Sequence record: NC_047815.1 | Direction: 5' to 3' (one strand) | Length of the DNA stretch: 64,000 nt | Shown: piece after piece, positions 16,406-24,538 of the stretch | Position numbering within the stretch: position 1 is the stretch's first letter | Layout: every line of letters begins with the position of its first letter | The notes under the pieces: generated by a model | Databases searched by the model: none | Told to the model about the DNA's origin: nothing | Seen by the model: the letters and a program-made list of their open reading frames with translations, nothing else | Position numbers and translations under genes: made by a program

Positions 16406-17245
16406 ATGAAACAACTTTATTTTGGCAATCACGATGTACTTGACGTTAAACCCAACTTGTTGCCTACCGTTGTTATCGACGGTCGTCAGGACATTGCACG
16501 CATCGCGCATCTTGAGCATGTAATGCAGTGGCTGCAAGGCACAGTCAACATTCAGCTTGTTTATGGTGAAGATCGTCCGAACGTCCCTGGCATGTATATC
16601 TGCACAGACAGCGCAGGCAATGTTCGTTATGGTGAAGTGCAAGACACGGCGGCTAATTGCTTCCGCTTTGTTGAGCGTTACGAAAACACAGGCTACACAG
16701 CTTGGTATGACAAGCAATCGGCTGATGAAGATTGTATCGTTGCCAGCGATCTTGATATGTCAGAACTCAGCAACTGGATGCTGTTGATGCCTACTCGTAG
16801 CCGCAATCAGGCAGACGTGACCAAGTTTCCTGCCGAGTATCGTGCCGTCAAAGACGCTACCGAAGTCAGTGTCACTGCCAAGCCATGTGATCTACGTGAT
16901 GCACAGACTCTGGGGCGCACAGAAAAGATCAATGAGTCTGTGCGTCAGTATTATTTGTGGCAGCGCAATCTTCGTGGTGAAAGCCGCGTCACGTTTGCTA
17001 CGGCTCTTGCTGCATATGTCTCAGGCATTGAGGGTGATTGGGAAACAGATGAGCTGTATGACCTAACGCTTGAAAGTTGGAAAGAGTATGCACGCTACTT
17101 GAAGCCTGATGGTTTTCAACGAGAACTCGCTACAGACAACATCTTTGTTATTGCCCGCACCTGCTACTATCATGTAGTCAAGCGCACTCCTAAAACTAAC
17201 CGTTACTACGATACTGTTTTATCTCAGGTGGAAGAACATGCGTAA
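16406..17245 (+). CDS. Hypothetical protein
   Basis: GAGGA SD before ATG 16406. Confidence 0.8.
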   Translation: MKQLYFGNHDVLDVKPNLLPTVVIDGRQDIARIAHLEHVMQWLQGTVNIQLVYGEDRPNVPGMYICTDSAGNVRYGEVQDTAANCFRFVERYENTGYTAWYDKQSADEDCIVASDLDMSELSNWMLLMPTRSRNQADVTKFPAEYRAVKDATEVSVTAKPCDLRDAQTLGRTEKINESVRQYYLWQRNLRGESRVTFATALAAYVSGIEGDWETDELYDLTLESWKEYARYLKPDGFQRELATDNIFVIARTCYYHVVKRTPKTNRYYDTVLSQVEEHA

Positions 17246-20817: not shown

Positions 20818-21690
20818 ATGAAACAAGTTGCACAATTCCAAGGTCACGAAGTAACTGCCGACGGCGTTCTTGTAGAAGTCGTTCGCGCATTTGGTCAGTC
20901 TGCCGAACTGCTTGCTGTGTTTGATGAAGACCAGTTACGTGAAGTTCTTGGGCTTTTCGGCACAGCGCCAAGCAATGTGCGTGACTGCAATCGCCTTGAA
21001 CTGTTGTATCTGTTGAGTAACAGAGTACGCGATTCCGATGATGCATTGCGCGTCGCTGCTTACGTCACACATAAGTTTGGTGCATCGGAAGACGATGACG
21101 TCCTGCTGCCTTTGTGTGAAGGTCTGATTGACCATACCTCTTATCTCAATGATGAAGATGCCGATGACGAAGACGAAGATGATGATGACTTCGATCATGT
21201 TGCCGACGACGAAGAAGACCAAACTAACTGCGATAGCTGCGGTGATGAGTTTGATGCTGTTGGTCGTTGTAGTTGTGCGACTAGCTATGACTTTGACGAA
21301 GATGAGGAACACGCCGTGATTAAACCTAAAGATGGCTCACAAGTGTTGGAAGTCAACTATGTTAATGCTATCGGTACTATGCGCGATGACGTTGTGCTTG
21401 CGCTAGTTCCGTTTATTGTTGACAGTCAAGGCGGGGATGTGTCTGTGCTTACCGCTCAAGAAGTTCGCCTGTGGTTGCAGCAAGCCAAGTCTGTGCAGCT
21501 TCGCACCGTGCTGCGTTATGTTCGTGATGCCGAAGGTCAGGCGTCAGATGCATGGACTGAGCAGAATCCAAACCTGTTCAGTGAGCGTCATGCTATCCTG
21601 CTTACTATTCTCAGCATTCTGCATCCACAAGATCCACCTTCAGATGATGACGATCAAGCGGACGATGAGAACTATGCGCTTGCACCGTAA
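20818..21690 (+). CDS. Acidic hypothetical protein with CDSC..CSC motif
   Basis: AAGGT SD. Confidence 0.8.
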   Translation: MKQVAQFQGHEVTADGVLVEVVRAFGQSAELLAVFDEDQLREVLGLFGTAPSNVRDCNRLELLYLLSNRVRDSDDALRVAAYVTHKFGASEDDDVLLPLCEGLIDHTSYLNDEDADDEDEDDDDFDHVADDEEDQTNCDSCGDEFDAVGRCSCATSYDFDEDEEHAVIKPKDGSQVLEVNYVNAIGTMRDDVVLALVPFIVDSQGGDVSVLTAQEVRLWLQQAKSVQLRTVLRYVRDAEGQASDAWTEQNPNLFSERHAILLTILSILHPQDPPSDDDDQADDENYALAP

Positions 21691-21706: not shown

Positions 21707-22033
21707 ATGACCGACAAGGAAGTCGAGTCATTCTTGCTTGCTCCTGACCAGTGTAACTTTGTTAAGGTAAGAAAGCTGGAAGATGGTGAATGGATTGGCA
21801 TCTATCGATTAGCCTATACTTGGTCAGTGTGCTGCGGTATCGGTGAAGTCACTAGCTTCAAATATCGCTGGTGCTTTGAGAACAGAGAAGAAGCCGAGTA
21901 CATGTTTGCCAACTGTGTAGACTTCGATGATGAGCCGGATGTTGATCATCGACACACTCTTGTTGGTCATCGTTATGGTTCACGCGGCCCTCGTCTCGTT
22001 ATGCTCGATCAACATGGATTCCCAAGATGGTAA
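21707..22033 (+). CDS. Hypothetical protein
   Basis: Alternative start 21674. Confidence 0.7.
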   Translation: MTDKEVESFLLAPDQCNFVKVRKLEDGEWIGIYRLAYTWSVCCGIGEVTSFKYRWCFENREEAEYMFANCVDFDDEPDVDHRHTLVGHRYGSRGPRLVMLDQHGFPRW

Positions 22034-22341
22034 AGAATATTCTCGCACGACTTTATGAACATGTTGCCAGCGGTAAATCAAACGCTGTAAGTACCATTAC
22101 CGATATCCTTGAATATCAGGGCGGCGTTGAAGATATTGAACAAAACCCACAACCGTTCCTTGATTACCTGCACGACAAGTTTGATATTCTCGATTGGTTT
22201 GAAACGCGTATCATTCTGGAAGATATGTTGTGTGTAACGTTTCCTCGTTTGTTTGATGAACACCTCGAGCGCGCAACAACTGTTGAGCAGTTTGAACAGA
22301 CATTGCTGCCTTATATGGAGGTCGAGGATGATAGTGCCTAA
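22027..22341 (+). CDS. Acyl-carrier-protein-like protein lacking the Ppant serine
   Basis: DILDWFETRIILEDML...DEHLERATTV aligns to ACP [16 protein letters not shown]...DEEAEKITTV. Confidence 0.6.
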   Translation: MVKNILARLYEHVASGKSNAVSTITDILEYQGGVEDIEQNPQPFLDYLHDKFDILDWFETRIILEDMLCVTFPRLFDEHLERATTVEQFEQTLLPYMEVEDDSA

Positions 22342-22786
22342 CATCGAAGATCATACTGGCATCGACAATGCCGTGATACTTGTTGATTCTGAAATCGATG
22401 AGGGCAAGCGAGCTATTGAGTCTTGCTTACTTGCCTTTGGCCTGAAAGCCTCAGACATTTTCTATTCACCAGTTTACTTTGACGAGCACGGTGAATCGCA
22501 AGGAGGATGGGGCGCAGAGCTGACAGATAGTTCGAAAGGACGTCTCAAAATCTGTGATGATAAATCAATTCGTGACGTCTGCATGATTAGCGGTGATGAC
22601 CTGCCTAGCATACTCGATACAATCCGCGATACTGGTAATCGTATGCGGCGTCGTGCTCTCGGTACAGTAAAGACCCTGAGCAAGCGTCGTGTGTATCTTG
22701 AATTGACCTCAGACGAATACGCCTCTCTGCAAGCTAAAGCAGGTGGACAATCTATCAGTGATTATATTAAGAGAAAACTTCTATGA
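22328..22786 (+). CDS. Hypothetical protein with C-terminal RHH-like domain
   Basis: VYLELTSDEYASLQAKAGGQSISDYIKRKL; GAGG SD. Confidence 0.65.
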   Translation: MIVPNIEDHTGIDNAVILVDSEIDEGKRAIESCLLAFGLKASDIFYSPVYFDEHGESQGGWGAELTDSSKGRLKICDDKSIRDVCMISGDDLPSILDTIRDTGNRMRRRALGTVKTLSKRRVYLELTSDEYASLQAKAGGQSISDYIKRKLL

Positions 22787-23025
22787 GCGAGTTCAATCCT
22801 ATTGCCTTACGTCCGTTGATCAAAAAGTTTCAGCACGGCACAGAGGCACTGACCAACAATGAAGTGCGCCAGTTACGTGAATACTATCGCGTGGCAAGTG
22901 ACGTAGCAAAAGCTGATCCTGCTCTGGAGGGCATCAGTGCCTACGTCAACCTCAGCTATCAGCAACTGGATCGCTTCTTTGAGGCGCGTAAGCTGAAAGA
23001 GCCTGAAACTGACAGTGCTTCATGA
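22783..23025 (+). CDS. Hypothetical protein
   Basis: Coupled start. Confidence 0.7.
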   Translation: MSEFNPIALRPLIKKFQHGTEALTNNEVRQLREYYRVASDVAKADPALEGISAYVNLSYQQLDRFFEARKLKEPETDSAS

Positions 23026-23121: not shown

Positions 23122-23547
23122 ATGCCTCGACCTATGTCTAGTCCGTATCGCACTATGGAAATAACTCTTCCGAACCTTGCCGCTTTCTTCGAAGATCTCA
23201 AGCAAGACTCGGACGCTGTTAAGATTGTAGAACAAATGCAATGGGCAGTGCATGATCCAGACGTTCGCATCTATGCTGCTTACTACGACAACAGACCAGT
23301 TGCTGTTATTGGTATTCTGCAAGATGTGTATCTGCGTTTCATTGTGGTACGTGAACCACATCGACGCAAGGGCGTAGGTCGTTCGCTTGTTGAGAAGTAC
23401 GCTCAACATGTGAAAGGTATAACTGTAGATAAAAGTGATACAGGTTGTCAAATGTTCTTCCGCAAAGTTGGTTGGGTCGATTACGAAGCAATGCAGCTTG
23501 ACCAGCTTGACCAGCTTGCAATGATTCGCGGTGATTTTTTAGCATAA
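23122..23547 (+). CDS. GNAT-family acetyltransferase
   Basis: LRFIVVREPHRRKGVGRSLV; TAAGGAG SD. Confidence 0.75.
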   Translation: MPRPMSSPYRTMEITLPNLAAFFEDLKQDSDAVKIVEQMQWAVHDPDVRIYAAYYDNRPVAVIGILQDVYLRFIVVREPHRRKGVGRSLVEKYAQHVKGITVDKSDTGCQMFFRKVGWVDYEAMQLDQLDQLAMIRGDFLA

Positions 23548-23554
23548 GGTTTTT

Positions 23555-24538
23555 ATGAAACTCGGATTCGCCTGTAAACTTATTGACGAGAACGGCAAGC
23601 AACCATTCGCTAGTCGCAGCGTCAACTTTTCTCAATTGTCTAAGCTGTCTGAAACAGATCAGATTGCAAAGCTGATAGAGATTGCACAGCACAATGTTCA
23701 GGCCCTGTATGATATGATTGTTCATGTTGGTCGCTTGCGTCCTGATATGCGTATGTTCCGCATCACCAGTGGCTTGCTGCCGTTGTTTACTCATGAGCAC
23801 GTCCATCATCTGTATGTTGAGTACGTGAATGATCTGATTGCGCCTCAGCTTGCAGCGTGTGGTCGTGCCGCTCGTAGTCGTGACGTTCGTATCAGCTTTC
23901 ACCCAGGTCAGTTTACCGTGCTTGCCTCTCATCGTCCTGACGTGATTGAGAACAGCATCGAGGAACTTGAGTACCACACCTGGTGTGCAGTTCAGATGGG
24001 TTATGGTCGCAAGTTCCAAGACTTCAAGATCAATATTCATCTGTCAGGTAAACTTGGCGCATTCGAGTTTCGTCGTAGCTTCGGTCGTCTCAGCCGTGAG
24101 TGTCGTCGTATGCTCACAGTTGAAAACGACGAAGTGTCCTCAAGCATTGAAGAATGTTTGACGCTTGCGGACATCTGTCCTGTTGTTCTCGACATTCACC
24201 ATCATTGGGTTATGACCAACGAGTACATATCTAGTGGTGACAGTCGCGTTCAGCAGGTTATCGACTCTTGGCGCGGCGTTAGGCCGACGATGCATTTCAG
24301 TGTATCACGCCCAGAGTTTGTTCCTTCAGACACACTGCCAGACCAGAACAAGTTGAGCGTCAACAAGGTCAAGCTACGTGCTCACAGTGACTACTACCAC
24401 AACGAGGTAGTTAATGCATGGGCACTGTCATTTGACCAGTTCGATATTATGTGCGAGTCGAAAGCTAAGAATCTAGCGCGAACAGCGTTGCTTTTAAGGC
24501 AGCCGTACTCTGCAAATCATTGGTCAAAAAACAGCTAG
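23555..24538 (+). CDS. uvsE: UV damage endonuclease (UvsE/UvdE)
   Basis: LGFAC, MFRITS, RISFHPGQF, LTVENDE, VLDIHHH, AHSDY, DIMCESKAK. Confidence 0.92.
   Translation: MKLGFACKLIDENGKQPFASRSVNFSQLSKLSETDQIAKLIEIAQHNVQALYDMIVHVGRLRPDMRMFRITSGLLPLFTHEHVHHLYVEYVNDLIAPQLAACGRAARSRDVRISFHPGQFTVLASHRPDVIENSIEELEYHTWCAVQMGYGRKFQDFKINIHLSGKLGAFEFRRSFGRLSRECRRMLTVENDEVSSSIEECLTLADICPVVLDIHHHWVMTNEYISSGDSRVQQVIDSWRGVRPTMHFSVSRPEFVPSDTLPDQNKLSVNKVKLRAHSDYYHNEVVNAWALSFDQFDIMCESKAKNLARTALLLRQPYSANHWSKNS

Follow-up and report, generated by a model that had tools for sequence, protein, structure and literature searches.

Here, we describe gp276 of the Erwinia jumbo phage vB_EamM_Yoloswag, a small protein that is likely to combine a fold of the acyl carrier protein (ACP) type with a conserved loss of the serine to which ACP attaches its 4'-phosphopantetheine. 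The stretch of DNA analysed, in the following called the window, comprises 64,000 nucleotides and represents the right end of the Yoloswag record (KY448244 / NC_047815, record positions 195701-259700); the complete genome measures 259.7 kb and the host is Erwinia amylovora. Over the 4.6 kb surrounding gp276, the sequence matches Yoloswag at 100% identity. The open reading frame (ORF) in question is annotated as gp276 (locus tag HOR66_gp275), 'hypothetical protein', and encodes an acidic product with an isoelectric point (pI) of 4.2 and a net charge of -15. gp276 presents an ACP-like scaffold that cannot be modified at the canonical site, is kept under selection, and resides in phages that themselves lack carrier-protein chemistry. 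Its mode of action is probably the binding of another protein. As a complete explanation we tentatively propose an accessory ACP-fold protein of Yoloswag- and Rivsvirus-like phages, acting as an apo-ACP competitor on a client of the host ACP, AcpP; this we regard as possible rather than probable.

The assignment is carried by the predicted structure. From an alignment of six sequences, AlphaFold2 (AF2) modelled gp276 with a predicted local distance difference test (pLDDT) of 86.9 and a predicted template modelling score (pTM) of 0.80, the five models ranging from 85.6 to 86.9. DSSP assigns helices to residues 5-14, 21-28, 34-39, 42-51, 54-68, 76-82 and 86-96. A BFVD model of the same protein, which was built independently, agrees with the AF2 model at a template modelling (TM) score of 0.98. 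The AF2 model was compared by VIA-align with 48,161 cluster representatives of the PDB, without Foldseek pre-filter, and the best 50 rows were considered; all of them (50/50) are acyl or peptidyl carrier proteins (ACPs or PCPs). They comprise type II ACPs, carrier domains of polyketide synthases and nonribosomal peptide synthetases (PKS/NRPS), the phosphopantetheine-binding (PP-binding) domain of ALDH1L1 and mitochondrial ACP subunits, and the alignments span whole ACPs, with 67-83 residues aligned, Z 4.0-5.8 and a root-mean-square deviation of 2.9-4.5 Å. Foldseek returns ACPs or PCPs in approximately 43 of its top 50, with weak E-values of about 1, and when its list is re-aligned with VIA, the top 50 are again all carrier proteins; in this re-alignment, the values for E. 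coli AcpP (6n3p_K) are Z 4.7, 3.2 Å and 73/77 residues. This is in line with the ESM Atlas model (pLDDT 0.71), the structural neighbours of which are all PF00550 proteins, with TM-scores of 0.51-0.54 (query) and up to 0.63 (target). The scores are modest; the weight of the fold call lies in the neighbours being uniformly carrier proteins. On these grounds a carrier-protein-like fold is predicted with good confidence, and the model comes out as the initial annotation of the window, which had named AlphaFold and Foldseek as a check on its ACP call, had supposed. An AF2 model from two sequences (pLDDT 56), which had unrelated helical proteins as Foldseek and VIA neighbours, was discarded in favour of the six-sequence model.

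The agreement extends to individual residues. The long helix of the model begins exactly at residue 54, with D53 as capping residue, and this matches Ser36 and Asp35 of ACP. The P73-R74-x-F76-D77-E78 turn together with the short helix 76-82 appears as the counterpart of P55-D56-E57 and helix III, and the family-invariant residues D53, D56, P73, D77-E78 and T85 come to lie on the ACP-conserved D35, D38, P55, D56-E57 and T63-64. Within the presumed helix II, D56, E59, E65 and D66 of Yoloswag gp276 fall on D38, E41, E47 and E48 of AcpP; only D56 and [DE]66 of these acidic residues are kept family-wide, and D53 is conserved, too. The counterpart of ACP helix I is the helix 21-28 according to the sequence alignment, while the structural alignments start at residue 1-4.

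For the comparison at sequence level, E. coli K-12 AcpP was taken from the annotated genome. BLASTP aligns residues 24-87 of gp276 with residues 8-67 of AcpP at 21/65 identities (32%) and a pairwise E of 0.005, whereby D53-I54-L55-D56 stands on D-S-L-D, P73 on P55, D77-E78 on D56-E57 and T84-T85-V86 on T-T-V; MAFFT and hhalign repeat this register. The alignment to E. coli ACP from which the initial annotation had started is thus reproduced in the same register, and so is its observation that DSL has become DIL through the ATT at 22186: the I54 codon occupies 22186-22188, between GAT on its 5' side and CTC GAT TGG on its 3' side. In Smith-Waterman comparisons with 1000 shuffles, three divergent family members score against E. 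coli AcpP at p 0.010-0.021, and the scores against four genuine phage ACPs are mostly not significant. A hidden Markov model (HMM) of the family, run against real versus shuffled ACPs, reaches p 0.0055 with the E. coli protein and 0.036 with that of Bajun; with the others, p lies at 0.08-0.30. Searches of NCBIfam and PHROGs gave no carrier-protein match for gp276, and searches of PDB sequences, with a single sequence as well as with profiles of three and six members, found no carrier protein. Altogether, the sequence resemblance between gp276 and AcpP is marginally beyond chance, and the likeness to ACP becomes convincing solely at the level of the predicted structure. True homology is likely but unproven.

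The family is small. Among 50,697 phage records searched with tblastn, the gp276 protein is found in Yoloswag and in pEa_SNUABM_5 (Rivsvirus, 47% identity) only. A word-index search contributed P0002, which is 76% identical to gp276 and stems from a 259.6-kb phage contig of run ERR2145437 and from a second run, and a profile search contributed P0004, P0005 and P0006 (41-48% identity). An exhaustive phmmer search of 1.84 billion representatives yielded no further real relative; a single-sequence scan of viral contigs found no gp276-related locus, and an alignment-based scan found the pEa_SNUABM_5 contig only. One further candidate, P0003 (E 5.6e-6), was rejected. It is a metagenomic protein of 1126 aa made up of about twenty tandem repeats of ~57 aa, which inflate its phmmer score; per repeat, the BLASTP matches reach only ~20 bits.

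In the alignment of Yoloswag gp276 and its five relatives, the position equivalent to Ser36 reads I, I, F, I, I, F, and the position thereafter is L, I or V. No Ser, Thr or Cys occurs at or beside the N-terminus of helix II in any of the six homologues, and the invariant residues are D53, D56, W57, P73, R74, F76, D77, E78, L80, A83, T85, F89, P95 and Y96. In the three genomes read, the codons at the key site are ATT, ATC and TTT, the first two of them synonymous, and the pairwise ratios of nonsynonymous to synonymous substitution rates (dN/dS) amount to 0.09, 0.27 and 0.37. The initial annotation had made its call dependent on the homologues: a serine kept by them, together with a sequencing error at ATT, would have spoken against it. 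Neither is the case. That the ORF is not a gene, or that the Ile codon is an error in a normal ACP, can be dismissed for practical purposes; ATT lies indeed only one base from AGT, but the Ile or Phe in all six sequences, the three different codons, the dN/dS range and the confident fold refute this idea and establish a real gene. gp276 is a genuine gene under purifying selection, and the hydrophobic residue itself is selected.

With respect to class membership, gp276 shows the predicted four-helix fold of PF00550, and lacks the attachment Ser of the (D/H)-S-(L/I) motif as well as a score reaching the HMM gathering threshold. As two of the three testable PF00550 features are missing, we advise against annotating gp276 as an acyl carrier protein, and membership in PF00550 proper is not supported. 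Since Ile or Phe, which offer no hydroxyl, replace the Ser, there is no phosphopantetheine arm at the canonical site. A six-frame scan of the whole phage genome detected no PF00550 domain, and the genome holds no PF01648 phosphopantetheinyl transferase (PPTase). It is very improbable that gp276 is nevertheless a working carrier protein with a non-canonical modified residue or a different prosthetic group. Carrier proteins with variant attachment motifs do exist, and PDB 2afe is among the structure matches; however, the start of helix II is free of Ser, Thr and Cys throughout the family, and the phage has neither a PPTase nor an acyl or adenylating enzyme with a PP-binding partner. The Cys or Ser near the C-terminus is explained by the overlap with gp277. 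We considered the acidic tail ending in D-D-[C/S]-A as a built-in swinging arm and rejected this, as its codons overlap the conserved gp277 start M-I-V-P-N. The same overlap accounts for the conservation of the D-D-[S/C]-A terminus in the family, and the Cys/Ser difference in the tail is a synonymous Ile change in gp277.

From a functional point of view, gp276 would be a pseudo-ACP that has no catalytic role and acts through contacts with other proteins. Binding would presumably proceed through the retained 'business end' of ACP, made up of the helix II cap D-x-[LIV]-D and the P-R-x-F-D-E turn, and the equivalent of this region is the most conserved surface of gp276. I/F54 and the invariant W57 may form an exposed hydrophobic knob at the place where the cofactor arm would emerge. 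The most likely target would be a host protein that normally docks AcpP, which gp276 would compete for or inhibit in the manner of an obligate apo-ACP. Three candidates accept apo-ACP: PlsB, the glycerol-3-phosphate acyltransferase; AcpS; and the joint of MukB. The interaction with SpoT requires holo-ACP, and SpoT would hence be a poorer decoy target. The decoy idea is plausible because an engineered obligate apo-ACP suppresses growth (PMC4736557) and because apo-AcpP binds the MukB joint via helix alpha-2 and stimulates the ATPase as well as holo-AcpP does (PMC8602292). Recognition of helix alpha-2 by ACP clients is electrostatic (PMC8602292), the S36T variant of ACP is neither modifiable nor functional (PMC3340395), and inhibition of MukBEF by a phage protein is known from T7 gp5.9 (PMC7617805). 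By analogy with these cases, a decoy function is a reasonable hypothesis for gp276, even though the host-client mechanism as such stays on the doubtful side. Still bolder, and in our estimation unlikely, is the idea of gp276 as a natural, permanently apo protein mimic of ACP without precedent, the Ile/Phe-Trp knob of which would plug the phosphopantetheine entry of a client (MukB joint, PlsB or AcpS) and so disable MukBEF or phospholipid synthesis during infection. In the full-text literature we found no natural serine-less ACP mimic in phages, and likewise no other natural or virus-encoded protein mimic of ACP, whereby the library is limited and the result is no proof.

Several observations weigh against this interpretation. 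With Z < 6 and a Foldseek E of ~1, the structure comparisons score modestly, and in helical proteins a Z below 8 may reflect a common arrangement. Comparing the gp276 family with five ACPs, hhalign gives P 0.04-0.07 and a probability of ~1%, and a Pfam scan of three members at E<=10 revealed neither PF00550 nor another carrier-protein match. The N-terminal half is ~25 residues longer than in a canonical ACP, which could occlude ACP-like docking. Yoloswag and P0002 have E59 and E65, whereas S and Q stand at these positions in the Rivsvirus-like members; this weakens a strict mimicry of the AcpP recognition helix. Finally, cellular AcpP amounts to ~100 µM (PMC8602292), so that a competitor for its sites needs high affinity or abundance.

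The first of these points would equally suit a different explanation, namely that gp276 resembles ACP only as one small helical bundle resembles another, be it through convergence or through a divergence that is very old, and that the function is unrelated to ACP biology, e.g., the inhibition of an unrelated host or defence protein. Besides the low Z (only 4.0-5.8), the Foldseek E-values and the hhalign probability, the missing matches to PF00550, NCBIfam and PDB sequences (three members, six-member profile) point in this direction, as do the shuffle tests, which reach significance with E. coli AcpP alone, and the fact that many proteins of the gp276 gene block are equally acidic. Yet a mixture of helical bundles is not what the structure searches return: two top-50 lists and the ESM Atlas neighbours contain carrier proteins only. 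Moreover, three sequence methods arrive at one register, the invariant residues lie on the ACP motif, and the long helix starts at the Ser equivalent. We consider this explanation rather unlikely.

gp276 is placed in a plus-strand series of small genes with overlapping stops and starts, and such overlaps link gp274-gp275-gp276-gp277-gp278; the coordinates are collected in Table 1. The order of a 290-aa acidic protein (gp274), gp275, gp276, gp277, gp278, a GCN5-related N-acetyltransferase (GNAT) and a UvdE endonuclease is common to Yoloswag, pEa_SNUABM_5 and the ERR2145437 phage, and this synteny also speaks for a real gene. Of the phage records, 52 (Erwinia, Dickeya, Yersinia) contain a gp277 homologue and 16 a gp275 homologue. 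In Snuvirus, Alexandravirus and Sasquatchvirus, a hydrophobic ORF of 65-67 aa takes the place of gp275 and gp276 between the gp274 and gp277 homologues, and a Yersinia phage has a basic 70-aa ORF in the corresponding slot. gp276 is thus an accessory gene of particular lineages that occupies a variable slot, a pattern that fits the profile of host-interaction genes. As side observations, the 65-67-aa ORF carries two hydrophobic, transmembrane-looking stretches, and in Erwinia Y3 the gp275 homologue is placed elsewhere, upstream of the gp274 homologue.

This context bears on another possible role: gp276 might be a pseudo-ACP that serves a phage protein as adaptor or regulatory subunit, with the translationally coupled gp275 or gp277 as the most obvious partner, similar to the structural use of ACP in mitochondrial complexes. 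The start/stop overlaps and the gene order common to the three phages agree with such a role, and ACP subunits of complex I and of mitoribosomes are among the top structural neighbours. However, homologues of gp277 (52 records) and gp275 (16) are present in many jumbo phages without gp276; the neighbours are hence independent of gp276, which argues against an obligatory complex. In addition, an unrelated 65-aa membrane ORF sits in the slot of Snuvirus, Alexandravirus and Sasquatchvirus, and gene overlaps are the rule throughout this genome region. An adaptor for a phage partner is in our view improbable.

Table 1. Coordinates of gp276, its parts, its neighbours and corresponding loci in other phages (window positions, except where a locus label precedes the colon).
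Feature	Position	Strand	Source
gp276 coding sequence (104 aa + stop)	22027..22341	+	ORF list, annotation
ATGGTAA overlap, gp276 start codon within gp275 3' end (translational coupling)	22027..22033	+	
N-terminal half of gp276, predicted helices 5-14, 21-28, 34-39, 42-51	22039..22179	+	
Motif D53-I54-L55-D56-W57 at N-terminus of predicted helix 54-68, equivalent to AcpP D35-S36-L37-D38-T39	22183..22197	+	alignments, model
Predicted helix 54-68, counterpart of ACP recognition helix II	22186..22230	+	DSSP of model, alignments
P73-R74-x-F76-D77-E78 turn, predicted helix 76-82 (III), invariant T85, predicted helix 86-96 (IV)	22243..22314	+	
14-nt overlap of gp276 end with gp277 start (M-I-V-P-N)	22328..22341	+	
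gp268, DksA/TraR-type zinc-finger protein (region)	16750-17007		
gp274	20818-21690		
gp277 and gp278	22328-23025		
Ribbon-helix-helix-like C-terminus of gp277	22661-22783		
gp279, GNAT acetyltransferase	23122-23547		
gp280, UvdE-type endonuclease	23555-24538		
gp274 homologues	L012:1620-2321, L014:3242-3955		
65-67-aa ORF in the gp275-gp276 slot	L012:2308-2502, L013:2326-2526, L014:3933-4127		
Single-protein form of gp277-gp278	L012:2498-3052, L013:2516-3064, L014:4127-4684, L015:2486-3121		
gp268 counterparts	L005:2460-2717, L014:1513-1770, L015:1202-1459		
Bona fide phage ACPs	L007:2986-3249, L008:2740-3228, L009:3001-3234, L010:2986-3231		

Some features of the neighbouring genes were observed along the way. 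In pEa_SNUABM_7, Dickeya AD1, Erwinia Y3 and Yersinia fHe-Yen9-02, a single protein of 183-212 aa matches gp277 (152 aa) with its N-terminal part and gp278 (80 aa) with its C-terminal part; either the gene was split in Yoloswag/Rivsvirus, or two genes were fused in the other phages. The last ~35 residues of gp277 resemble a ribbon-helix-helix DNA-binding motif (V-Y-L-E-L-T-S-D-E-Y-A-S-L ... S-I-S-D-Y-I-K-R-K-L-L), with weak, sub-threshold Pfam matches to ParD (E 0.076) and a NikA-like family (E 0.12); in the Yersinia phage homologue, the same motif is located mid-way in the fused protein. gp274 (290 aa) is hyper-acidic (net -48) and contains a C-x-x-C ... C-x-C cluster. Its C-terminal D-D-E-N-Y-A-L-A-P is kept across genera, while the rest is very divergent.

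Further downstream, gp279 is a GNAT acetyltransferase (Acetyltransf_10, E 6e-11) with a weak PanZ-like match (E 1.8e-4), directly followed by gp280, a UvdE-type UV-damage endonuclease. The pair is kept in pEa_SNUABM_5 and in the ERR2145437 phage, and related genera have the endonuclease without an adjoining GNAT gene. Approximately 5 kb upstream of gp276, gp268 encodes a DksA/TraR-type zinc-finger protein that is conserved in all of these jumbo phages, a hint that this genome arm holds modulators of host physiology or transcription.

ACP is a highly connected hub of the bacterial cell, which serves fatty-acid, lipid A, biotin and lipoate synthesis and binds SpoT, IscS, SecA and MukB. A selected serine-less look-alike in lytic jumbo phages would be a ready probe for which of the ACP interactions matters during infection, and for how clients separate the protein surface of ACP from its cofactor arm. 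Should inhibition of MukBEF, PlsB or AcpS prove true, gp276 would represent a new class of host-takeover factors and a template for inhibitors of ACP-docking sites; if not, it would still be a carrier-protein fold recruited to a non-carrier role. According to the model, the latter description suits gp276, an accessory phage protein with a carrier-protein fold put to non-carrier use. In addition, a 'hypothetical protein' that is missed by all sequence libraries becomes nameable from its structure.

How does gp276 compare with known systems? With AcpP and PF00550 it shares, as predicted, a long helix II, a short helix III and a helix IV in the same order and spacing, as well as the D-x-L-D N-cap, the P-(x3)-D-E motif and the T before helix IV in register; like AcpP, it is small and very acidic (pI 4.2 versus 4.05). 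Unlike these, the gp276 family has Ile or Phe instead of Ser, an invariant Trp at +3 and ~25 extra residues in the N-terminal half, and gp276 has no PF00550 HMM match and a Z of only ~5 to solved ACPs.

ACPs are described as rare in phage genomes, and the ACP of Eneladusvirus was found by liquid chromatography-tandem mass spectrometry (LC-MS/MS) of phage particles (PMC7760394). Bona fide ACPs with DSLD occur in Ralstonia phiRSL1 (ORF083), Burkholderia BCSR5, Brevundimonas Bajun and Xanthomonas phiXF1; the phiXF1 gene is flanked by the two gyrase genes (B and A), and the BCSR5 protein has 162 aa, with the ACP domain making up its C-terminal half. Similar to gp276, these genuine phage ACPs are small and acidic, have a carrier fold, belong to jumbo phages, and are found among hypothetical genes without obvious lipid enzymes. 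In contrast to gp276, they keep DSLD, and aligned with E. coli AcpP they reach 38-49% identity. There is no detectable sequence similarity between gp276 and these proteins; the likeness is one of the predicted fold only.

Another small and very acidic phage protein is T7 gp5.9, which imitates a ligand of a host complex (PMC7617805). It differs from gp276 in being a DNA mimic, and it inhibits RecBCD as well as MukBEF (PMC7617805). The engineered obligate apo-ACPs, E. coli S36T and Synechococcus S39A, resemble gp276 in the ACP fold, which is predicted for gp276, in the replacement of the attachment Ser and in being unmodifiable, and they provide the mechanistic model of a decoy. They are laboratory point mutants that otherwise equal AcpP and carry Ala or Thr at the site, whereas gp276 is natural, ~30% identical at best over 65 residues, and has a bulky hydrophobic residue at this position. 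Judged by analogy, the laboratory Ser-to-Ala/Thr apo-ACP would nevertheless be the functionally nearest known counterpart of gp276.

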